DNA of 64,000 bases from Monocercomonoides exilis PA203 (taxonomy: Eukaryota; Protista; Preaxostyla), in assembly GCA_001643675.2 (NCBI GenBank), contig LSRY02000027.1, positions 620,001 to 684,000 of the forward strand. The letters run 5' to 3'. Made by a program: the position numbers and the translations under genes. The notes under the pieces were generated by a model, which was given only the letters and a program-made list of their open reading frames with translations, was not told the DNA's origin and did no database searches. Numbering within the stretch: position 1 is the stretch's first letter; each line of letters opens with the position of its first letter. Below are positions 1 through 53,526 of the stretch, piece by piece.

Positions 1-3000
1 GGAGGAGGCGAGTCGGTGAATCTCTCGCTCAGCACCGAAATGTTGGAGGAGGAAGAAACAATGGTCAGTGAAGAGATGGATGATGAATCTGAATCATCGG
101 AAGAGCAGTCGGAGTGGAGGGCAATGCAGATGACCATGTGTTCGGAGAAGAGCACAATGTGCGGGCTCAGATTGGCCAAAGAGGGGAGGCCATCTTCCTC
201 GTCCTCAAAGGCGTGGAGCGCCCCATTCGCCACCCAGAACAGGATTTGGGCAGCTGTCATCTCCCTCTCCTTCAGCGTGCCAATCGCCATCTCCTTCTTT
301 TCATTCCTCCCATGCAGCAACATGAACAGAGAATCCCTCAGGTCCACAATCAGCTTCTCATGTGGTGAAGAGCACGCCATTGCATCCACCAAGTTCGACA
401 TGGATGAAGTGGTGGGGCACAGATCCTCTCCGCGAACAAATGTGGATTCTGTGTCTGAAGTGTCTATTGTTGAAGTGGATGAAATGGATGGTGATGGTGT
501 TCTCTTTCGAATCTCTTCTTCTTCAACCTTTTCCAGTACCCATTCTGGGATCTTGTCTGAGTCTCTTCCAAGAATGTATTCAGTTGAACCACACTCAGAA
601 AGAAGATGCTCTGATGACTCGGAGTGCCCCAAGCTTTTCTCATACACTCTTTTCTTTATCCTCTCATCGTTCTTCTTCTCAACATCCCCTGACACTCTCC
701 TCCACTGCTCCTCGGGTGACATCTCCATCGTCACCATCTCAAATGCCTTCGGATCCTTTCTGATGTTATCGTTCACAATCTCTTCTAACTCTTCGGTTCT
801 TCTCTTTTGCTTTCTCCATCGGATGGTCACAACAACAGATGCAATAATCACGATCATGAGAATTATTGCCATAATGATCACGATGATTGGCCAAAGTGAT
901 TTTCCTTCTTTCCCTCCTTCAGCAATTCTTTCATCGCTGTTTCCTTGGATTTCACTTCTGTTCTTCAGGATGAATGCCCCGGTCGATGAAGGAGCATCTT
1001 TCCTGCCAAACAGAATGCACACTGACACTTCTGTCTCTGCACCCACCGCTGCCAGCTGTGCCGACAGAATGGCTGTTTGGATTTCATTCTCCCCCACATA
1101 TCCATCTTCCTCGATCTCATGACCCTCGATATGCTCTTCGCTCCCGTCTCTGAAGCACACTCTCACCGACAGATTGCACGGCACCAACAACTTTCCGCGT
1201 ACACTCAAACTTATCTTCTCTCCTCCTCTGCCCATCTCTGCAGACTCCAGCACAGGGATAAACAGCGCAGAAGGTCTCTCTCCTGCAATCCCCTCCAATG
1301 TGCATCCCTCATCCAGAATCCACAGTGATGTGTTATCCTTCAATCCATCTCCCCCTTTCAAGTTGACAACATTCACCATTCCCGAATCCGAGCAGAGAAT
1401 ATTTCTTCTGATTGATGGATATTTTTCAATGGATGGGTTGTTGTTCTCAAACTTACCATCTTCAATTTTCAAACTTCCTCCCCAAATGGAAAGACCTCCA
1501 TCAGAGCAGTTCACAAAACTCATATCCTTTATATAACCTGAGCTCTCCTTCATCTCAACAACTGATCCATTCCATTTGCACACATCCACTTCCTCATTTG
1601 ATTGCTTTTCATTTATTTTTCCGTCAAACAAGCACTGCTTCATCTGAATATTCTTGCACATCAAAAGAGATATCATCTTCCCTTTCTTTCTTCTCGATTC
1701 ACATCCAACAAACGAACAGTTCGAAAACTCCACATTTCCTTCCATCTCCTCAACATCAACCACTCCTGCACTCTCATCCACACACGTGATGTTCTCAAAT
1801 GAAGATGACAGAATTAAAATTGAAAACTCATTATCCTCTCTGTTCTTCATTTCTGCTTCATCGCCATTCACACTCTCCATCCATCCATTTTCCACTCTCG
1901 AATTACCAGCTCCACTGATCTTCAAATAACCTTTTCTTCCCTCAATATTTCTGAGTGTCAACCCACTCACGTCAGTATCTCCTTCAATCTGCATCACTGT
2001 TTCACTCAAAAACGAAAGCCACATAACACTCACATTCCCCATTGAGCATTTCCCTCTTTCCACATATATCAGACAGAATGGCACTTCCACCATTTCCCTC
2101 TCAACCGAGCTCACTCCTTCAAATGAACACATGCTGATCGATGTCTTTCCTGAACTTATCTTCATAAATGATGAATGCGTTGTTGGAAGTGGAGTTTGTG
2201 TTGTTTCAACTTCTTCAAATGAAAATTGAATCCATCGCACATGCACCTGCTCATTTGTCTCCACAATCATTTCTTTGCTGCAATTCATCCTCCCTTTCAC
2301 AATCACACGGCTCTGCGCTTCATGAATCCCGCTCAGTGTGAGTGTCTCCAATCCAATTTCCTCATCAATCACTGACTCCTCGTCAACAAACACCTGGCTG
2401 AAGAAATCGTGTGTCAGATGCCTCAGCCCAAACCCAATCGTTGCACAAGGAAGTGAAGGCTTCCCACATTGCTGTTCATTCCTCCCTCCTTTCCCTTCTT
2501 TGCTCGAGATAACAATCGTGTCTGACTGGTATTTCACAATCAGAGTCATCAAATCAATTGCCTTCTCTTTGTGCTCTCCCGCATCCATCCCATAGATTGC
2601 ATTTTGTTCGATGAACTCTTTATCACGGAAGTCAATGTTGAACTGTGTTTCGTTGATCTGTCTCTCTATGCAGTCGCACATAATAAACACATCATTCCCA
2701 ATACTTGCTGTATTCCTTCGGAAAATCACACCATCAAACACATAATCCAGCTCTCCCCTCAATTCAGTCTTCAGATACACTCCACCTCCTTTCCCTACGC
2801 TCACAGAGCATCCACACTGCTTCACGCTCGTGTTCACAACATCGAACAACCCTCCTTCATTCAACTCAAACAGAATCGCCCCTCCCTTTGTGCTTCTTCC
2901 ACAACTGCACCCTTCTATCAGCGAATCTTCAACAACAAGCGTCACTCCACTTCCGCTCTTGCTCAAAATAACACTCGGATCAACTCCTTCTCCTTCAACT

Positions 3001-6000
3001 GATCCAATACTGCAATTCTTCATCCTCATCTCACCTTCTCCATTTGCTCCCTCTCCTTCAATTTCAAACAAACCCCCACTCTCCAATTTCGCTTCAATAA
3101 CTGTAAATTCGTCAATCACACTCACAACTTCTCCACTCACCGCAAACACACCTCTCTTCCCAAAATACGAAAGTAATTTGAACCTCTTCATCTCCAGCTC
3201 CCCTTTCTTCACAACACAAAATACAACGTTTCCCATCCCTTCTCTCTTTCCCTTCCATGAGATCGAACAGTCTTCCCATTCAATTTTCTCTCCCTCACTC
3301 ACAATCATCCCTGCTTCTCCACTTCCCAAAACATTCATCACACACATCTCCAGTGCTCTCAGAATGATCATTCCACTGTTGCGAATGCACACTTTTGTTC
3401 CACTTTCTCCTTCACTCCCCATCACAACTGTTCCATATTCCATCTCATCACATCCTGCTCCCACTGATTCCACATCAATCCCACTCAAATCATGTTCCCC
3501 CTCCACTCTTATCTTTTCCTTCACTCCCACCACTTTTCTCCCTTCTCCTCTCTCAATATGCTTCAATCCCATTTCCAATGTCTCACACGGATCCTCTTCA
3601 CTCCCACATCGAACAACATCATCTCCGTTTTCCCACACCACTATCCTCTCGCTCCTGTATTCAATGATAAATCTCAACAGATCTGTGCTTATCCGCTTCT
3701 CATCACTTCCAACAAACAGATTCTGATCATCTTCCATCCCCTCAACATGAATCGCAAATGTCTCATTCCTCACAGTCACATTTAGATCTTTATCCAAAAT
3801 GAACATGTTCTTCCCAACAAATGCCTCGTTCCCCGCAAACTTCACTCCCTCAAACTTGAATGGTATCCATCCCCTCCTTTCACTGCAATTCGCATACAGC
3901 CATCCTCCTTTCCCAACACTTGCTTCCTCTGCATTACACTCCTTCATTAGCCCACCATTCACATTAAGAAGCGCGTTTTCAACAGCTGCAATACACATTC
4001 CTCCTCCATTCCCTCTCCCTGCCACACATCCCTCAACGCTCGTGTTCCGCACATCTACTATCCCTCCTTCACCAACCGTTCCACGCACCATCCCTCCATC
4101 TCCATCTTTCACAAGGATACTGCTCCCATTGCATCTCCAAATGGATACCTCTTTCGCATCAAGTCCCCTTATCACTCCTGAATTTTCAAAATTACATGAA
4201 CTCCACGAACACTCCCTCATCTTCGCAATACAGTTGCTCTCTACACAAATCATACTGCTTCCTCCCATGTTGCACCCACTGGCAATCACTCTTTCTGATG
4301 TGAGAATGCTTCCTTCCTCACAAACAATAAATCCTTTTTCTCCTTCAAACGTGATATCATTCAGCTCCACATTCTTCAACGAGACAGATGACAATCTCCC
4401 ATTCGCTCTTATTCCAGCCTTACCAAACCTCACAGAATCAAATCTCAGTGAAGTCACATTCGCCTCTCCCTTTTCCACGACAATAAAGCTGTAACCAACA
4501 TAACTCACTCCAACTCCAACTTCAAATGTGACAATACATTCACTCAAGTTCAGTGTTTCTCCTTTCAGCTGGAATATCGCCTCATGATGCTCAAGAACAG
4601 ATGGAATCACCAGCTCAATCTTTCTCATCGTTGTTTCCTTCAACGCCACAAATACTCCGTTGCATCCTTCCTCATCACCATTGCATGCTACCTCGCATTT
4701 AACAACAAGTGATCCATCATCACCTGTTCCTTCAATCACTCTTGCCATTTTAGAAAAGATCACTGTCGAACCAACCTCAACTCCATTTCCAGCTTTCATC
4801 CTCACTTCTGTTCCATCTGCTGATGTATTCTCTTCCCTTTCAATCGGACAGTTCAATGTTCGGCACTCGAAAAATGTGTGCCCACACTGAGGATGGTCAG
4901 CTCCTGAAGCTGAAACATAGATCTCACTCCTCGGAACATCCAGGAGATAGCACACAATCGGAATCACCAGTGTTGCATTGTTTGTGTCTCCCGCTCCCTC
5001 CGCATCATGCACATCTTCACTCAAAAGCGAAACAAATTCATACCTCTCTTTCGGTATCAACTCCAGATGAGGCGAGGAAATAAACACATTCTTTCCATGA
5101 ACCGCATCGTTTCCTTTAAAAACTACATTTGATATTTCAAATTCAGTTTCTGGTTCTTCTAGCATAAGGTGCAACGCTCCTCCACCGCCAAAGTCTGATG
5201 ATGAATTATCAAAAGCAGAGCATTTGCAAAATGTCACTTTTTTACTGTCATCACTAATGTTACCAATTCTCAAAAAAGATCTATTATTCAACATGATGCT
5301 TATGCATCCTCCATTCCCATTCATGCAACTGCAATTTACATGTGATACATTTTCAATTGTTAACTGCTGCGAAAATGATAATGATGCTTCAATAACTGTT
5401 CCACTTCCTGAAACTCTTGTTATTGAATCAAGTGCCAATCCACTAAAATTTAGATGATTAAACTCTGCTAACTTGAAAAGAGGATAAAGTGAAAAGAAAG
5501 ATTTAATTTCAACTGATTGAAATGATACAATTCCATTTTGAATGATAAAAATAGATTGTTGCAATGGTTTGGACAAGTCGCTTGCATATTTAATCCAAAG
5601 TTTGTTCAATGACAAACATGAATCTTGCATCACTTCAAACAACGAGAATTTCTTTTCAGGATTTATATCAAACAAAATATTCAACGAATGAATTGAGAAG
5701 TTTCCATTCTCAATGTGGCACCAGCTTGGAAGAGTTATATTTGTGATTATTGAAGGTGCTTTAATTTCTGCATTTGAAATTGAAGGCGTTGAATAAGACG
5801 TTTCAAACACTTCTTGGGCATAAATGGAAATTGTTCTGTGATTCACAAAAAGACAATCAGTCATATAAGTTTCTTCGCTGACAAAAACATTTAATGATCG
5901 AAGAAACGTTATGTGAGATATGGCGTAATGAATAGATTTGCATTCTTCACCTTCAACTCCACATATAAGAGTGTCCAAACCACTATTTAAATTCACATGT

Positions 6001-7433
6001 AATTCAACTGGACTCATATCTGGAATCCAATCTGGTTCGTTATAAGACGAATTACAACTTCCAGAAATTGGACATCTTACAAAGCGAGGTTGTTCACTTG
6101 TTGAGAAGCATAATTGAAAAGAAGATGAATTAACATACGAAAAAAATGTTGAATTACAAGCCACATCATTCCCATCTTCTCCAGCTTTGTTATTAAGAAA
6201 CATCAAAAATCTAAACTTTAGTGATGTTGTTGAAATGGGAGACCACAAATAAATTGCTCCACCCCTATATCCAGCATAATTATTTTCGAATATACAGTTA
6301 AAAATTCTATAGTTATTGGGTGGATAAGGAACACCTATTGATCCTCCATATGACTTTGAAGTGCAGCGTGAGAAATTACATTCCGCCAAGAAACTGTTTT
6401 CATTCATTCTTTCCATGTTTAACGCACCAAAATAATTATCAACGACCGAACAATTCATGAATTGTGAATTCACAACAATTGTAGTAGTTCCGAACCAAAG
6501 AGATATTGCACCGTCTTGAATTCTTGATGAGCAGTTTTGATATGTGCAATTTATGATATTTGTTTGGCACTCGGATTCATGATAAACAGCTCCACCAAGT
6601 TTTTCTGCGCTGCAGTTTTTGAAAATGCATTTGATTGCGTCCAAATTGCATTTATTTCCAGCGTATATAGCACCACCGTTAGATGCAGATGAACAATTAG
6701 TAAATGCATCGCAATTGAACACAGCATTAGTTGTTGGTGTTTGCCTGCCATTTTCTCCGATGTATTCAGTATTGTTAATTGCTCTCCGATTACAAAAAAG
6801 ATATGTTGTATTTTCAGATTTACAAGATGATGAACATGAAATAAAGAAAGGAATTAATGAATAGCATGGCAAATGATCAATAGAAATAAATGAAGTTGAA
6901 GAAAAACAAGACAAATGTCCCTTTAATAATGGTTTCCAATTAGCTTTGATATGAGGCACTGATAGGTTTAAAAACAAGCATCTGTGAACATTGCACGATA
7001 TTACAGATGAAGATTTCTCGAACGAGTGTGACAAAAAGGAAATAGAATTAAAAGTGCTTGACGATAAACTAAATGAATTAACGGGAACCGTTAACTGTCT
7101 TGCATTAACACTTGAAATTATTGAATGATATTCTAATATTGAATCTGTGGCTTTAATTGTTATGTTTATTAAATCAACGTTGCTTTTATCACAAGTTAAC
7201 AAATTTTGGGACTTTTTCGAAGAAATATCAATATGGCACGCAACCATCTGTAGTTGCGAAGAAATAAGTGTTGAAACGTATTTATCATCTTTCTCAGATT
7301 TTTTCCAAACTTTATTGAACGATAATGAAGAGTTATCAGAAACGATACCTGTAGAAACGATTGAAAGGAACCCAGTATTATGTTTTTCTGATTGAATTTC
7401 AAAGATGATGAGAGCAATGATGAATAAGTCCAT
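1..7433 (-). CDS. Giant type-I membrane protein with Pmp-like (GGAI/FxxN) Cys-rich modular ectodomain, one TM helix and a cytoplasmic pseudokinase-like domain; 3' end lies beyond the window (>2477 aa)
   Basis: ATG at 7433 (MDLFIIALIIFEIQS, signal-like). Hand translation of both ends gives the same frame, and the track lists no stop-terminated ORF in this frame, so it appears open to base 1. Motifs: SNGGAIY, KLGGAVY, and four G-x-D/N-x3-CG-x5-C modules (~5960, 4880, 3610, 2460). TM WPIIVIIMAIILMIVIIASVVVTI (~820-893) is followed by RWRKQKRR. Cytoplasmic DSLFMLLH...QILFWVANGALH...ANLSPHIVLF. Confidence 0.88.
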   Translation of the reverse strand, partial: MDLFIIALIIFEIQSEKHNTGFLSIVSTGIVSDNSSLSFNKVWKKSEKDDKYVSTLISSQLQMVACHIDISSKKSQNLLTCDKSNVDLINITIKATDSILEYHSIISSVNARQLTVPVNSFSLSSSTFNSISFLSHSFEKSSSVISCNVHRCLFLNLSVPHIKANWKPLLKGHLSCFSSTSFISIDHLPCYSLIPFFISCSSSCKSENTTYLFCNRRAINNTEYIGENGRQTPTTNAVFNCDAFTNCSSASNGGAIYAGNKCNLDAIKCIFKNCSAEKLGGAVYHESECQTNIINCTYQNCSSRIQDGAISLWFGTTTIVVNSQFMNCSVVDNYFGALNMERMNENSFLAECNFSRCTSKSYGGSIGVPYPPNNYRIFNCIFENNYAGYRGGAIYLWSPISTTSLKFRFLMFLNNKAGEDGNDVACNSTFFSYVNSSSFQLCFSTSEQPRFVRCPISGSCNSSYNEPDWIPDMSPVELHVNLNSGLDTLICGVEGEECKSIHYAISHITFLRSLNVFVSEETYMTDCLFVNHRTISIYAQEVFETSYSTPSISNAEIKAPSIITNITLPSWCHIENGNFSIHSLNILFDINPEKKFSLFEVMQDSCLSLNKLWIKYASDLSKPLQQSIFIIQNGIVSFQSVEIKSFFSLYPLFKLAEFNHLNFSGLALDSITRVSGSGTVIEASLSFSQQLTIENVSHVNCSCMNGNGGCISIMLNNRSFLRIGNISDDSKKVTFCKCSAFDNSSSDFGGGGALHLMLEEPETEFEISNVVFKGNDAVHGKNVFISSPHLELIPKERYEFVSLLSEDVHDAEGAGDTNNATLVIPIVCYLLDVPRSEIYVSASGADHPQCGHTFFECRTLNCPIEREENTSADGTEVRMKAGNGVEVGSTVIFSKMARVIEGTGDDGSLVVKCEVACNGDEEGCNGVFVALKETTMRKIELVIPSVLEHHEAIFQLKGETLNLSECIVTFEVGVGVSYVGYSFIVVEKGEANVTSLRFDSVRFGKAGIRANGRLSSVSLKNVELNDITFEGEKGFIVCEEGSILTSERVIASGCNMGGSSMICVESNCIAKMRECSWSSCNFENSGVIRGLDAKEVSIWRCNGSSILVKDGDGGMVRGTVGEGGIVDVRNTSVEGCVAGRGNGGGMCIAAVENALLNVNGGLMKECNAEEASVGKGGWLYANCSERRGWIPFKFEGVKFAGNEAFVGKNMFILDKDLNVTVRNETFAIHVEGMEDDQNLFVGSDEKRISTDLLRFIIEYRSERIVVWENGDDVVRCGSEEDPCETLEMGLKHIERGEGRKVVGVKEKIRVEGEHDLSGIDVESVGAGCDEMEYGTVVMGSEGESGTKVCIRNSGMIILRALEMCVMNVLGSGEAGMIVSEGEKIEWEDCSISWKGKREGMGNVVFCVVKKGELEMKRFKLLSYFGKRGVFAVSGEVVSVIDEFTVIEAKLESGGLFEIEGEGANGEGEMRMKNCSIGSVEGEGVDPSVILSKSGSGVTLVVEDSLIEGCSCGRSTKGGAILFELNEGGLFDVVNTSVKQCGCSVSVGKGGGVYLKTELRGELDYVFDGVIFRRNTASIGNDVFIMCDCIERQINETQFNIDFRDKEFIEQNAIYGMDAGEHKEKAIDLMTLIVKYQSDTIVISSKEGKGGRNEQQCGKPSLPCATIGFGLRHLTHDFFSQVFVDEESVIDEEIGLETLTLSGIHEAQSRVIVKGRMNCSKEMIVETNEQVHVRWIQFSFEEVETTQTPLPTTHSSFMKISSGKTSISMCSFEGVSSVEREMVEVPFCLIYVERGKCSMGNVSVMWLSFLSETVMQIEGDTDVSGLTLRNIEGRKGYLKISGAGNSRVENGWMESVNGDEAEMKNREDNEFSILILSSSFENITCVDESAGVVDVEEMEGNVEFSNCSFVGCESRRKKGKMISLLMCKNIQMKQCLFDGKINEKQSNEEVDVCKWNGSVVEMKESSGYIKDMSFVNCSDGGLSIWGGSLKIEDGKFENNNPSIEKYPSIRRNILCSDSGMVNVVNLKGGDGLKDNTSLWILDEGCTLEGIAGERPSALFIPVLESAEMGRGGEKISLSVRGKLLVPCNLSVRVCFRDGSEEHIEGHEIEEDGYVGENEIQTAILSAQLAAVGAETEVSVCILFGRKDAPSSTGAFILKNRSEIQGNSDERIAEGGKEGKSLWPIIVIIMAIILMIVIIASVVVTIRWRKQKRRTEELEEIVNDNIRKDPKAFEMVTMEMSPEEQWRRVSGDVEKKNDERIKKRVYEKSLGHSESSEHLLSECGSTEYILGRDSDKIPEWVLEKVEEEEIRKRTPSPSISSTSTIDTSDTESTFVRGEDLCPTTSSMSNLVDAMACSSPHEKLIVDLRDSLFMLLHGRNEKKEMAIGTLKEREMTAAQILFWVANGALHAFEDEEDGLPSLANLSPHIVLFSEHMVICIALHSDCSSDDSDSSSISSLTIVSSSSNISVLSERFTDSPP

Positions 7434-36201: not shown

Positions 36202-39200
36202 TTACTGCTCAGCCTGACCAAGCCCTTCCTCAATTGCAACTTGAAAATCTGTATCTGTTCCAGCAAACGTTAGTTCCTCTGGAACAGCCTCTTCTTTCTT
36301 ATTGTGCTTCTTCTTCTTCTTCTTTTTCTTCTTTGGTTTTTCTGTTATTATTTCTTCATTTGTATCCTTTTCTTCAATGAGATGTTGTGCTTCCTCCTCA
36401 TTCTGCTCATTTTGCGTCAAAGAAACATCAGCAAAGTTCTGTGTATCAGCCACTGCCAACTCTTCGGCTTTAGTCGAATTCGTTGAAAGAGTGATATCAT
36501 TCAGTGCTTTATCATCAGTTGCTGTTGATGCTGACAACTGGCTGGCATCTGGTGGCAACAGATCTCCAATAAGTTCATCAAGCTGAATAGGCACACCTGC
36601 AGATGGATCAGCATTCACTTCTTCTTCAGTACTCTTTTGATGCTTCTTCTTCTTCTTCTTCTTCTTTTTCTTTTGAGGTTGCTCTTGTTCCGTTTCTCCA
36701 GATACAACTGCTGGATTCTCTAATTCATTGTCATTGACAGCTGCATTTGTTTTGCTCTGTTCTGTTTGTTCTGAATCAATAATCTCTTCAGATTTTGTTT
36801 GTTCGGATATTGCAATTGTCGAATTTGCTCCAATTGAATCTTCACGAATTATTTCCGAATCAACAGCATCATTTGCGAAAGGAGCCATGCCATCTGATTC
36901 TCTTTGAGTTGAACTTTCAATAGCTTTTTCTTCATCTCCAAATAATGTGAATGGAGTGCTTGATGCTGAAGAAGATGCGTGATAGTATTCTGGCAATTTG
37001 TCCTTTGCAACTTTTTCGTCAGCAGGTGGTGCCAAAGAATCTGAAGAAATCTTTGCTCCTTCCTCAGGCTCTCTATCTTCTCCTATCTCCTGTTCATCCT
37101 CGTTTGCTTCCTGCAAACGCTTCGACTTCTTTCCTTTTCTGCGCTTTCCTTTCTTTCCCTTCTTTCTGCCCTTCATATTGGAAGTGCCAATATCGTCATC
37201 AAAGCCAGGAATCATGATATCGTCATCCTGCATAGCCGAAAGAGGAGATATTGTGTGTGCGTCTGTCAAACTGTCTGGAGAATTTGTCATGACACCATCT
37301 TGTTGCAACGAGTTTTCTAGCAAAGTTGTTTCTAAAAGCTTTCTCATAATGTCTTCTTCCAAAGAGTCGCAAAGCGAATCAGTTTCGCCAATGTCAAACT
37401 GGCTGGTTGCCAAATTAGTGCTGGATAGAGTACAATTCATACTTTGTGCAGCAGAATCGCTTTCATTTGCAAGAAGCGCAGCTGTGGACGAGTTAGAATT
37501 TAAATCAGCAGAATTGTTTCTATTTGCATGCCTCTTCGATTTCTTTTTCAACGGATATAGAGGCTCAGTTGTTCCAAACATGTCAACATCATGCGATGCT
37601 TCAGATGATGAGCATTTGTTGCTATCATCATCGAATAAGCAGCCATTTATCTCGCCTGGACCGTCTGACAGGTTTATTGAACCAGGCGAAGATATCCCAA
37701 GCTCTTTTCTTTTGAGTTCAGCTTCTTCAAACTTCGACACATCGACTCTCTGAATGACAACCGACGAGTCACCACCTTTGGACGATGTTTCGCTCACAGG
37801 ATTCATCACAATTCCAAGTTCGTCCATTTCAAAGGTGTGAATAGATCCTTTAACTTCTGCCTCGTCTTCAAACTCGTCAGATTCAATAGCAGATGTCTTC
37901 TTTGATTGTCTGCTCTTCGCAATCACTACTGCAACAATCACAGTCACAATAACAAGAGCTCCAATGACAATCAAAATAATCCACCAAGGAAATGACTTTG
38001 TTGAAGACTTGGAATATCTGTTGTTCCCTTCATTCCCATCATCAGTTACATCTGGAATGGGATCCGGTGTTGGATCAGTAATTACGATAATATCTTGCAA
38101 AAGAATATATTCCGTCCTCACAACGCTCACGCCGTTCGAATGTAACTCTGATGTTGAATGCTCCTTCAAATTCAGCACAGCTCGTGCCCAGATCTGAGTT
38201 TTTTCCATTTCAAAGGCTAATTGAAGTTGGGATATTGAAGCCTTGATCATAAATACATTTTGATTCACAAAGATGCACTCCGCAAATGACAATGGAACCG
38301 TTTGCTTTTCGGCCATCGCATCAGTTGTGTCCAAAGAAAAGAGCTCGAATGAAGCAAGGCACGGAAGAAGATTGCTTCCGACAAATCTGATGAATACTTG
38401 ATCTTCGTCTTCTGCCCTGTTAATTGAATTCACGTGAGGTCTGCAAAATTGATAGACTTTTTGAGGAAATGCTTTTAATGTCTCCTCAGATAAATCTTCG
38501 CTCTCTTGCAATCTCTGACCAACCGAGCCATTTATCGTGCAGCCGCTATTCTGCATCCAAAGTTCGAGGTATTCTCCTTCCAGTAGATTGTCTGGATCTC
38601 TCAATCCAGACTCATCAGAATACGAATCAATAATAAGAGCTCCTTTTTCACACAAAATGTTCCTATGAACAGAATTGTAGTCAGCATTGTTGATGGTGTT
38701 GTTAATGAATGCACAATTTTCAAAATGAGTTTCGCCTTCAATTATTGATAGTGCACCAATCGACGAATTAGCAAACGTAACTGAACTAATCGTAGAAAGA
38801 CAATTTCTGAGAGTAATAAGTGATCCCTCAAATTTACAGCTGAAATCTTCTTCAAAGTCTGCTTCATTATTTTCAGAACTAGCAAAGCCATTCAATCCTG
38901 ATATTGAACAATTAGACATTCTAATTATGCTTTCTGAGATGTTCAAAACTGTTCCATTTCCATGGACTTTATTGTTGCAACACAAATTTGAATCTTCAAT
39001 AAATAAAGCGAATGAAGAGAGACATAACAATGATTTTGAGCCATTCTGAGTGGCGTTTGCTAATTGCATTTTCGTTATGCTAGCATTTGCCCAGAATAAT
39101 TCGGTTGTTGAAGAATTGCTTAAAATGGAAGCAGAGGAAAATATTACATTATCAAAGACAAGTTCATTCAAATACAAATCCAACAAGTTCTCTCCATATG

Positions 39201-51200: not shown

Positions 51201-53526
51201 ATTTTTCAATGACGGCTCCGCTTCCATAATTTTTTGTAATATCATTAAAAGTGCATTTATCGAAAACAATTGAAGCATTTTCCCATTGGAAAAGCGAAGA
51301 ATCAGCTAATGTAAAACTTGAAATGTTTACTAAGTTAAGAGTTACAATTCCTGATTGCAAAATAAAAACAGATCTTGTGTGAATATTTGTTGGATTATCC
51401 GTTCCGATAAAACAATTGATAATACTCAAATTTGAACCGCCAACATTTATAAAGCTGTTTTTTGAGTTACACTTGAAAGTGAGGTTATATAAATTGAGAA
51501 CTCCATTTGACAATTTCATCATAGGATCAAAGCTTGATGCAACTGTTTTCTGTGATAAGCTCGAATTTACATTAATGAATTTGCTATTTATCTCAACTGA
51601 TTGTAATTCATTTGTGTCAGATTTTAAAACAATCGGATATGCTGCTGAATTGCTCCATCGCTGTGAAGTCACATATGCAACAGTCTTGCAAGGTGAATTT
51701 TCGTATCCGCATGTTGAATTATCTGCTCCTGTGCTTTCAACATAAAAGGTATCCATAACTTCTTCTGTTTTATTAAAATCCTTAATATCGTCCACGATTT
51801 CTTCTTTGTCTTCTTCTCTTTTATCCTCATTTTGTGTAAGCCAATCTCTCCAGTCAGCATTTACGTAATCATCACAGTAAACTGAAAAAGATTTATCGTA
51901 TGGTTTCCCGTTGTATTTGCTGGATATTGAGTAAGACTCATTATCAAATGGACTAATGCTCCATCCCTTGCTACACCACAATGTGAAATCTCGTGCACCA
52001 TTATTATCAGGATCAGTTGCAATATTATCCCGAAATCTGCATTCAAAAAATATCTTTTGGTTTGTTTCGCTGTCATTGGATGCTTCATAAAAAAAACCTC
52101 CACCATCACTTGCACTACAATTAATCCACCATGTACTAATTGCAGATACTCTTTGACTGTTGATATAGTTGTAAATCACTCCTCCTCCATATCCCATTTC
52201 ACCTGCTTTGCAATTTGAAAAAACGCAATAGTTTACTCCTTCGTTTTCTTCTTCGTTTTTTTTCTGTAATGAATATATTTCGTCAGCTGCTGTCCATTCA
52301 GCTCCACCTCCATCATTGGAGCTGCAATTAATAAAATAGCATTCAGACCACACACAAAAAAGTGCAATGGTAAAAGAAGTCCCTCCTCCTGAAAAAGAAG
52401 AAGTACAGTATTTCACTATCATTTGAGTAAACAAAGCACGCTTCACATTCTCACATTTCATTCCTCCACCAGATTCGTTTGCTGAGCAGCCTTCTAATTG
52501 GCCTTGAGTCACTTCAAAAACTGTATCAAAATCACTGGAACAAAATATTCCTCCTCCTTTATTTCCGCAAGAACAATTTATTAGATATGTGTAATTTAAT
52601 AGTAAAAAATTTGCATTCATACTGTAAATTGCCCCACCATTATCAGATGAATGACAGTTATTAAATGTGCAATTTTTAATTTTCAAATTAGCAGCTGCAT
52701 TTAAATATATAGCTCCACCAGAATTGCCAGTGCAGTTATTCCACACACAATCTTCAAATGTTTTGTCTTCAGTGATAATCTCTCTTGTTTTTTGTTCGCT
52801 GTTTGGTGTTTCAGCAGGCTTGAAGCGTCGGCAGTAATCAAATGAACAGTTATAAGATGAAAAAGAAGTTGAGCGATCGTTTATAGATCTTAAAATACTT
52901 CCATCCAGAACATCATTAACATGGTTAAATGAGCATCCACTTATTAGAATTGAAGAAGAATCTGAAGAAATGGGAGTATGCTTAACATCTTTATAATAAG
53001 ATATATTTGAAAAAAAGCATTGTCCAACTACAGCTGTTTCGATATTATTTGAGAAAAAATAAGGTGCGGAAGCTACTTGAAAAGAAGAAAATGATGATGA
53101 AATAATATTTATGCACCCGAAATGCAAATTTGATGGAAGTGGAAAAGAATGCGTAATAAGAGAATTGCAAATATTAGATGATGAATCAAAATGAAGTGAA
53201 TCATTAATTAAACTTAGAAAGCCTCCAGAACATAAAAATACACTCTGTGTTCTAACTAAAAGTTCAACAACTGAATTCTCCAAAAAAAATGAAGATAAGT
53301 TGTCAATAAAAACAGAGTTATCAGGGAAGTTATGTAGAAGCTTTGAATTTTCAATTCTAATGGTAGAGTTCTCAATTTTAATTATTGACGAAATGCAGCT
53401 ATAATTACCAAAATTAGTGCTAAAAGGTTCGTTATATTTGAGAAGGTTTATTGAATTGTCGTGATAAACTGCTTCTAAATCTGATGATAAAAAGCATAAG
53501 AAAAAAATTAAAAATTTCGTAATCAT
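36202..53526 (-). CDS. Giant (~5775 aa) type-I surface protein: Pmp-like Cys-rich modular ectodomain (12 modules), TM helix and acidic/poly-Lys cytoplasmic tail; interrupted by three 1-bp frameshifts
   Basis: ATG at 53526 (MITKFLIFFLCFLSS, signal peptide). Repeated GGAIY/GGGIY and FxxN motifs, and twelve G-x-D-x3-CG-x5-C motifs. TM FPWWIILIVIGALVIVTVIVAVVIA at ~37918-37992. Track ORFs 48907..53529, 48563..48967, 47514..48665 and 36202..47616 join if one C is restored at each of 48923-48927, 48651-48653 and 47602-47604. Confidence 0.88.
46463..51031. repeat. Coding tandem repeat, 1050-bp unit (350 aa), ~4.35 copies, essentially identical
   Basis: Identical shadow ORFs recur at 46679, 47728, 48777, 49826 and 50876 (spacing 1049, 1049, 1049, 1050). 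The only differences I saw are three C-run deletions. Confidence 0.97.

Follow-up and report, generated by a model that had tools for sequence, protein, structure and literature searches.

At the beginning of a 64,000-nucleotide stretch of the genome of the oxymonad Monocercomonoides exilis PA203 (contig LSRY02000027.1, positions 620,001 to 684,000), a long minus-strand gene encodes a protein with the apparent layout of a type I single-pass receptor, in which a signal peptide and a large ectodomain are joined through one transmembrane (TM) helix to a cytoplasmic kinase-like domain. It is likely, in our assessment, that this cytoplasmic tail ends in a truncated, catalytically dead kinase domain of tyrosine-kinase-like (TKL) ancestry and would serve as a non-catalytic docking platform or scaffold. 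A motif scan found none of GxGxxG, [VA][AV][IVL]K, HRD or DFG anywhere in the 447 residues of the tail. The glycine-rich loop, the VAIK Lys, the alphaC Glu, the HRD Asp and the DFG Asp are needed for ATP binding and catalysis in established kinase biochemistry, and canonical ATP binding and phosphotransfer are therefore impossible for a tail that has none of them. It is for this reason that a docking role is proposed.

The whole 64,000-nucleotide stretch is referred to here as the window and corresponds to C22:620001-684000 of the analyzed genome (82.3 Mb, 101 contigs). The original prediction, made from the letters of the window, had described a frame that continues past a TM helix into DSLFMLLH and further kinase-like strings, and all the strings it quoted were recovered in place in a frame that is open throughout (DSLFMLLH within window 309-359 and AAQILFWVANGALHAF within window 204-269, both on the minus strand). 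This single frame is uninterrupted from window position 7433 down to the window start and extends 522 nt past window position 1 to a stop at L001:978-980, which yields an open reading frame (ORF) of 2651 codons (complete gene, L009:481-8433, minus strand), with an in-frame stop directly preceding its first Met. The TM helix is followed by the stop-transfer sequence RWRKQKRR and is hydrophobic in all 30 aligned paralogues despite its varying sequence (ratio of nonsynonymous to synonymous substitution, dN/dS, 0.36). The cytoplasmic tail occupies L001:981-2321 (minus strand), with its residues 1-273 inside the window. No called gene with exactly this product is on record; the nearest annotated relative is MONOS_2898 (87% identity), and some family members are annotated as 'putative Protein tyrosine and serine/threonine kinase'. 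The features within the window, all on the minus strand, are as follows.

1 to 7433, minus strand: window portion of the gene (residues 1-2477 of 2651), as an uninterrupted frame
7389 to 7433, minus strand: hydrophobic N-terminus MDLFIIALIIFEIQS, a probable signal peptide, read from the sequence
897 to 7388, minus strand: Cys-rich ectodomain (86 Cys) that spans about 2,160 residues and contains GGA[ILVM] motifs (motif counts, ESM Atlas feature neighbours)
822 to 896, minus strand: the one TM helix, LWPIIVIIMAIILMIVIIASVVVTI, residues 2180-2204 (hydrophobicity)
420 to 821, minus strand: juxtamembrane region (tail 1-134), charged and E/R/K-rich, predicted to be helical and then disordered (dN/dS, hhalign, AlphaFold)
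567 to 626, minus strand: conserved juxtamembrane motif HSESSEHLLSECGSTEYILG, nearly invariant in 71 paralogues
309 to 419, minus strand: CPTTSSMSNLVDAMACSSPHEKLIVDLRDSLFMLLHG, probable remnant of beta4, beta5, hinge and alphaD (AlphaFold, HMMER, low-confidence hhalign extension)
204 to 269, minus strand: alphaE helix equivalent EREMTAAQILFWVANGALHAFE (hhalign of A3 against A2, RIPK1 alignment, model helix 64-88)
147 to 182, minus strand: catalytic-loop equivalent SLANLSPHIVLF, the LANLSPHIVLF stretch (hhalign pairing with HRDIKSGNILV)
108 to 140, minus strand: equivalent of beta7-beta8 and DFG, HMVICIALHSD (hhalign, AlphaFold)
1 to 107, minus strand: first part of a Ser/Asp-rich insert (tail 239-283) that stands where the activation loop would be and exits the window (sequence)

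Kinase homology and predicted fold of the tail

The kinase relationship of the tail emerges in steps, according to the depth of the profile used. The single sequence matches the Pfam family PK_Tyr_Ser-Thr (PF07714) with tail 284-379 on profile positions 163-257 (24.2 bits against a cut-off of 23.1), and by this single sequence no significant match was obtained for the window part of the tail, as the Pfam and PDB matches all lie outside the window. A profile of 71 paralogue tails (A1; mean column identity 73%) retrieved 362 kinase chains from PDB, ILK included, with all matches on the C-terminal part of the tail, and hhalign of the paralogue profile against five M. exilis kinases gave 97.7% probability for the same part. 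When tail 1-245 of this shallow profile was aligned with kinases by hhalign, there was no match (probability 0.1%), because the paralogues are too alike to carry the signal.

Searching a library of 1.84 billion representative sequences by profile returned 2781 matches at E ≤ 0.001. Divergent tails occur in four proteins of Blattamonas nauphoetae (BLNAU_16836, 18289, 17738 and 24705) and in unnamed Logan and JGI contigs, among them P0224, which has the same full architecture in 1792 residues; HRD, DFG and the glycine-rich loop were found in none of these divergent relatives. With Blattamonas and uncultured oxymonad relatives included, a 29-sequence core alignment with identity down to 20% (A3) retrieved 1447 kinase chains from PDB at E ≤ 0.001, including RIPK1 (8.6e-20, profile 69-268), B-Raf (7e-17, match starting at profile position 45), TNNI3K, TAK1, KSR2 and CTR1. 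Against M. exilis kinases, hhalign of A3 reached 99.3% probability (E 1e-20) from alphaE to alphaI, and PF07714 is matched by all 29 of these diverse members (best E 7.9e-15). It is thus the addition of divergent relatives to the profile which brings the window part of the tail into alignment with kinases. Four of the remote matches (P0208, P0217, P0219 and P0234) carry 3-10 tandem kinase domains with HRD and DFG intact.

In the hhalign columns, SLANLSPHIVLF stands opposite THRDIKSGNILV, and ICIALHS opposite KMTDFG. Hence HRD is replaced by LAN, the catalytic-loop Lys by Ser, the loop Asn by Ile and DFG by LHS, with Leu in place of the DFG Asp. These pairings reproduce the ones originally proposed, of LANLSPHIVLF with HRDLKPxNILL and of ICIALHSD with KIxDFG, and the first is bridged by BLNAU_18289, which reads LTALSTHNILLD at the catalytic-loop position and is a visible intermediate between the LAN and HRD forms. 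The catalytic-loop equivalent is near-invariant among 120 paralogues. Across the family, the column of the HRD Asp holds one of N, S, Y, H, T, A, R, G, C and F; a single paralogue has Asp there, and none of the divergent relatives does. The DFG columns read LHS or MHS, and no family member has D[FLY]G at this position. The glycine-rich loop, the VAIK Lys and the alphaC Glu are absent from the tail and from all family members scanned.

Downstream of the Ser/Asp-rich insert the kinase character of the tail can be read directly. RWKAPE begins 43 nt outside the window edge, and the adjacent DNA supplies LRWKAPE, SVAFSIGMMLWECLT (the SIGMMLWE stretch), PFGEYE, NGERPD and GERPTLSELRREF (the RPT stretch), which correspond to kinase subdomains VIII-XI. 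Extension to the C-terminus, as had been proposed at the outset, thus completed the C-lobe, and the complete protein holds no intact N-lobe, HRD or DFG. The Pro and Glu of APE (core P175 and E176) and the Arg of subdomain XI (R251) are invariant in 29 of 29 diverse members; in kinases, this Glu and this Arg form a structural salt-bridge pair.

Structure prediction agrees with the profiles. AlphaFold applied to the whole tail, with the 71 near-identical paralogues, gave a predicted local distance difference test (pLDDT) score of 42.8, and this model was kept out of the fold search. Based on A3 (tail 120-405), the mean pLDDT rose to 73.8, with a predicted template modelling score of 0.73 and confident model residues at 20-118 and 161-270. 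In PDB, Foldseek found 500 or more matches at E ≤ 0.001, and those listed are all kinases (RIPK1, TAK1, B-Raf, BTK, ILK and FGFR3). VIA-align likewise returned kinases only, with Z from 19.3 to 18.1: CTR1 (Z 19.3, root-mean-square deviation (rmsd) 5.0, 192 residues aligned), ILK (Z 19.1, rmsd 4.0, 200 aligned) and B-Raf (Z 18.6, rmsd 2.6, 170 aligned). The fold comparison, on which the original prediction had staked its claim of a kinase C-lobe devoid of HRD and DFG, accordingly came out in favour of that claim. The insert has a pLDDT below 50 in this model, i.e., it is predicted to be disordered; it is long (about 45 residues) in M. exilis only, and in Blattamonas and the uncultured relatives 15-40 ordinary residues take its place.

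The whole C-lobe is kept, from alphaD to alphaI, together with APE and the subdomain XI Arg. For the N-lobe, the evidence is more graded. Neither hhalign nor HMMER nor motif scans gave profile or motif evidence for beta1-beta3 or alphaC; in the juxtamembrane region, N-lobe motifs are lacking, the hhalign comparison with kinases is blank, and AlphaFold proposes helices only, at low confidence. In the relatives, merely 50-100 charged residues separate the TM helix from the core, which is too short and therefore leaves no room for N-lobe motifs. The core conserved across the family starts upstream of the hinge, at PTTSSMSNLVDAMACSSPHEKLIVDLRDSLF. In the model, strands at 25-30 and 37-41 are followed directly by a helix at 46-51 (alphaD), with pLDDT 82-89, and greedy hhalign extension aligns the two strands, in colinear order and at low confidence, to HPNLVRLVGC and FIVMQY in a TKL kinase. 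The tighter superpositions of VIA-align on B-Raf start at B-Raf 510-511, which we take to be the start of beta4. What is modelled is thus beta4-beta5 and the C-lobe alone, and a complete bilobal kinase fold was not obtained. The absence of an N-lobe, as originally proposed, stands for the glycine-rich loop, VAIK, beta1-beta3 and alphaC, and gives way for beta4-beta5 and the hinge, which seem to be retained. With less certainty than for the C-lobe, we describe the domain as a kinase without beta1-beta3 and alphaC rather than as a bare C-lobe.

Several points weigh against the reading of the tail as a dead, N-lobe-less docking module. The beta4-beta5 assignment draws on the AlphaFold model, the topology and a low-confidence alignment extension; in VIA-align, some rows begin on beta1 of the kinase rather than on beta4; and the juxtamembrane region, which was poorly modelled, could hold something that was not recognized. 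Non-canonical nucleotide binding, as in some pseudokinases, may persist in such a sequence. The docking role itself is drawn by analogy with KIND, ILK and the receptor pseudokinases.

On a rival reading, the family would consist of active receptor kinases whose missing N-lobe is added through splicing, comes from an alternative exon, or is contributed in trans by another protein that complements the C-lobe. Many short ORFs match only positions 2-165 of PF07714, M. exilis is intron-rich and its family is named tyrosine kinases in publications (Karnkowska et al., 2019, PMC6759080; Treitli et al., 2021, PMC8767320). The frame studied here is nevertheless unbroken from the ectodomain via the TM helix to the C-lobe, and the short ORFs that match the N-lobe alone are most easily explained as exons of ordinary kinases with introns. 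Moreover, the C-lobe itself lacks the HRD Asp (present in that one paralogue only), the loop Lys and Asn and the DFG Asp, and an added N-lobe would therefore not restore catalysis. We consider an active receptor kinase to be extremely improbable. Among the long full-length PF07714 ORFs, five loci were examined, and no active receptor relative with a complete kinase was found in them; they comprise TM-less cytosolic proteins with Ser-rich tails and one ordinary family member. As a separate observation, L052-L056 (on C14, C47, C13, C31 and C60) hold several ordinary cytosolic kinases in frames of 700-2,000 codons, and the very long, low-complexity tails behind them, rich in Ser, Thr and Pro, inflate apparent ORF lengths in this genome.

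Selection, copy number and the possible role of the tail

The tail is under strong purifying constraint. Pairwise Nei-Gojobori dN/dS values were calculated over 30 paralogues, with dS of about 0.9-1.1.

Tail 1-124 (juxtamembrane): 0.087
Tail 125-238 (subdomain V-VII stretch): 0.067, where constraint on the protein is strongest
Ser-rich insert: 0.156
Tail 284-345: 0.10
alphaH-alphaI: 0.41
Extreme C-terminus: about 1.1
Last 480 residues of the ectodomain: 0.35

Within the tail, the most constrained segments run from beta4 to beta8 and from APE to alphaG. As the low dN/dS is found at a dS near 1, this conservation reflects selection on the protein and not recent copying. Conservation of the tail and the number of its paralogues had both been named as checks of the original prediction; the former gave 0.067-0.10 over tail 1-238 and 284-345, and the latter a count far into the hundreds. 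A back-translated pattern for the invariant octapeptide NLVDAMAC, located in the tail, has 815 sites in the genome and none in the reversed control, and the tail is thus present at least 815 times, in more than 800 genes. Most copies have intact ORFs of 2,000-4,000 codons. Many of the NLVDAMAC sites form plus/minus pairs with a spacing of about 5.3 kb (e.g., C1:2263/7586, C1:75562/80860 and C1:189532/194832), so that family members seem often to be arranged as convergent inverted gene pairs.

The same numbers bear on the idea that these genes are decaying repeats or pseudogenes without protein function, and that the kinase resemblance is a fossil. RepeatModeler marks much of the family as unclassified repeats (PMC8767320), about 12 of 94 copies carry one or two TGA or TAA codons, some copies are stopped or truncated, and there is no recorded gene with the exact product of the studied copy. 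Decay is nevertheless difficult to reconcile with a tail dN/dS of 0.07-0.10 at dS of about 1, with the intact long frames of most copies, and with a tail core that is kept at 20-30% identity in Blattamonas and uncultured relatives, and we regard it as very improbable.

The juxtamembrane region raises a further alternative, in which the tail would be mainly a sorting or endocytosis module driven by the juxtamembrane motif and the acidic Ser clusters, with the half-kinase as a structural plug, and the protein an adhesin or phagocytic receptor rather than a signaling protein. This region is as constrained as the kinase core, and its motif is seen again as SESQQNLL, SDSQQSLL and SESTQDLL in the divergent relatives P0225, P0222, P0236 and P0180, so that a SESxxxLL pattern recurs which may be a phospho-dependent di-leucine sorting signal. 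The ectodomain is adhesin-like, and M. exilis lives among bacteria and is cultured with them (PMC12308965). On the other hand, the motif, as read from the sequence, departs from the canonical [DE]xxxL[LI] spacing, and the kinase-derived core is the only part kept in all oxymonad relatives, including those whose juxtamembrane segments are short and unrelated. A tail devoted mainly to sorting is, on balance, unlikely.

If the tail is a docking platform, as we favour, its mode of action could be envisaged as follows. The large and variable beta-helix ectodomain would face outward from a surface receptor, and ligand binding or ectodomain clustering would assemble the rigid C-lobe surfaces together with two flexible elements, namely the Ser/Asp-rich insert in the activation segment and the juxtamembrane SESSEHLL/EYIL motif (HSESSEHLL...EYILG). 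All of these would be offered to partners in the cytosol, both active TKL kinases, which would phosphorylate the flexible elements, and sorting or cytoskeletal adaptors. The outcome would be a coupling of surface recognition to uptake or signaling.

In a bolder and rather doubtful extension, the more than 800 genes would form a diversified recognition repertoire of this anaerobic gut protist, whose variable ectodomains are read out via an invariant N-lobe-less remnant by a mechanism undescribed for kinase folds. For a kinase acting in trans, the remnant could be an obligate C-lobe-type partner or a decoy substrate; alternatively, half-kinases could signal through ligand-driven clustering. If true, M. 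exilis would have a protist analogue of the immune-like or prey-recognition receptor families, built on a new signaling module. For oxymonad biology, the family would be a candidate for the recognition of bacteria, host surfaces or each other.

Ectodomain and genomic surroundings

The ectodomain is probably a chain of right-handed beta-helix modules resembling Pmp and DUF1565 proteins, an assignment made at the level of a lead. GG[AG][ILVM] is present 7 times, where shuffled sequences predict 0.6, and the neighbours in the ESM Atlas are Preaxostyla proteins first and then bacterial DUF1565, Chlam_PMP and Beta_helix clusters (0.95). FxxN is not enriched (8 against 7.1 expected), Pfam Chlam_PMP (PF02415) stays far below its threshold of 20.6 bits (10.9 bits, E 0.63), and a PDB sequence search with an ectodomain segment returned no match; PF13229 (Beta_helix) is precomputed for two paralogues only, P0038 and P0061. 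The Pmp-like character originally ascribed to the ectodomain is hinted at by the glycine motif and the Atlas neighbours, and not by the Chlam_PMP profile or FxxN. Other large surface genes of the window, at 38191-38925 and 52171-53028 (minus strand), have an ectodomain of this type at about 25% identity, and no match to the tail was found in them.

The gene has a convergent twin with a tail that is 95% identical, at C22:610373-611707 (plus strand). The 7.7 kb between the two genes, located in L058:1-9000 (= C22:611001-620000) immediately ahead of the window, form a near-perfect palindrome with a 199-nt centre, the complementarity of which is 99-100% near the centre and 94-98% at the gene ends. 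An acidic ORF of about 400 residues is present twice in the palindrome, once intact (L058:5487-6689, plus strand) and once split into two frames.

Relation to the published family and to known kinase-derived modules

The family is not new to the literature. Karnkowska et al. (2019) described 'protein tyrosine kinases' as the largest M. exilis family and, on the basis of homology to a kinase database, counted 332 predicted members, 320 of them TKL (PMC6759080), and Treitli et al. (2021) found that M. exilis tyrosine kinases overlap unclassified repeats (PMC8767320). This published TKL family is the same gene family as the one described here, with 332 published members against at least 815 copies in the present count. 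The word 'pseudokinase' does not occur in PMC6759080, and in the open-access literature on the M. exilis family we found no mention of lost catalytic residues, a missing N-lobe, the ectodomain or receptor topology, and no paper in which its members are treated as pseudokinases or receptors. The description as an unusual receptor class in the original prediction is fair in this respect and requires qualification in another: receptor pseudokinases and C-lobe-only modules such as KIND are already known kinds, and the family has been published, under a misleading name, as tyrosine kinases. The largest 'tyrosine kinase' family of M. exilis probably docks partners and does not phosphorylate, by analogy with these systems. 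In the literature, this largest family of a model eukaryote without mitochondria stands at about 330 tyrosine-kinase-like kinases. If all members, at least 800, are dead N-lobe-less receptors, the M. exilis kinome and its signaling capacity have been misread, and about one tenth of the coding capacity would serve surface recognition.

The closest likeness of the ectodomain is to the chlamydial Pmp and the Trichomonas Pmp-like beta-helix proteins, with which it shares GGA[ILV] repeats. The chlamydial Pmp proteins are anchored by an autotransporter barrel, whereas the M. exilis protein has a TM helix and a cytoplasmic tail.

As regards overall layout, HER3, plant atypical receptor-like kinases and the Entamoeba transmembrane kinases are type I proteins that combine a variable ectodomain with a cytoplasmic kinase-like domain, the signaling of which does not involve catalysis. 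The M. exilis family has the same type I layout, but the receptor pseudokinases have kept both lobes. To our knowledge, no receptor pseudokinase combines a beta-helix or Pmp-like ectodomain with an N-lobe-less kinase, and none has expanded to more than 800 copies. Among the plant examples, STRUBBELIG has been described as an atypical receptor-like kinase (PMC3095605).

The best matches of the tail, by sequence and by structure, include two pseudokinase scaffolds from the TKL group, ILK and KSR2. ILK is called a 'scaffold protein' by its PDB depositors and was crystallized with alpha-parvin. Both differ from the M. exilis tail, which is without beta1-beta3 and alphaC, in having a full bilobal domain, and ILK has moreover retained ATP binding (entry title 'ILK/alpha-parvin core complex (MgATP)').

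KIND, a protein-protein interaction module (PMC2064798, PMC5338823), offers the best precedent for the way in which the tail would probably work. Both are derived from a kinase C-lobe and have no N-lobe and no catalytic residues, a likeness in kind that does not demonstrate common descent. Membership of the KIND family itself was considered and rejected: PF16474 is touched by one of the 29 members (E 0.094) and gives no match at E ≤ 1 for the studied protein, and all 29 match PF07714. KIND proteins are cytosolic and metazoan, whereas the M. exilis module forms the cytoplasmic end of an oxymonad single-pass receptor, and its derivation from TKL kinases looks independent of KIND. If so, pseudokinase biology would gain a second, independent origin of a C-lobe-only module, the first on a transmembrane receptor, with hundreds of natural variants usable for mapping its conserved interaction surface.

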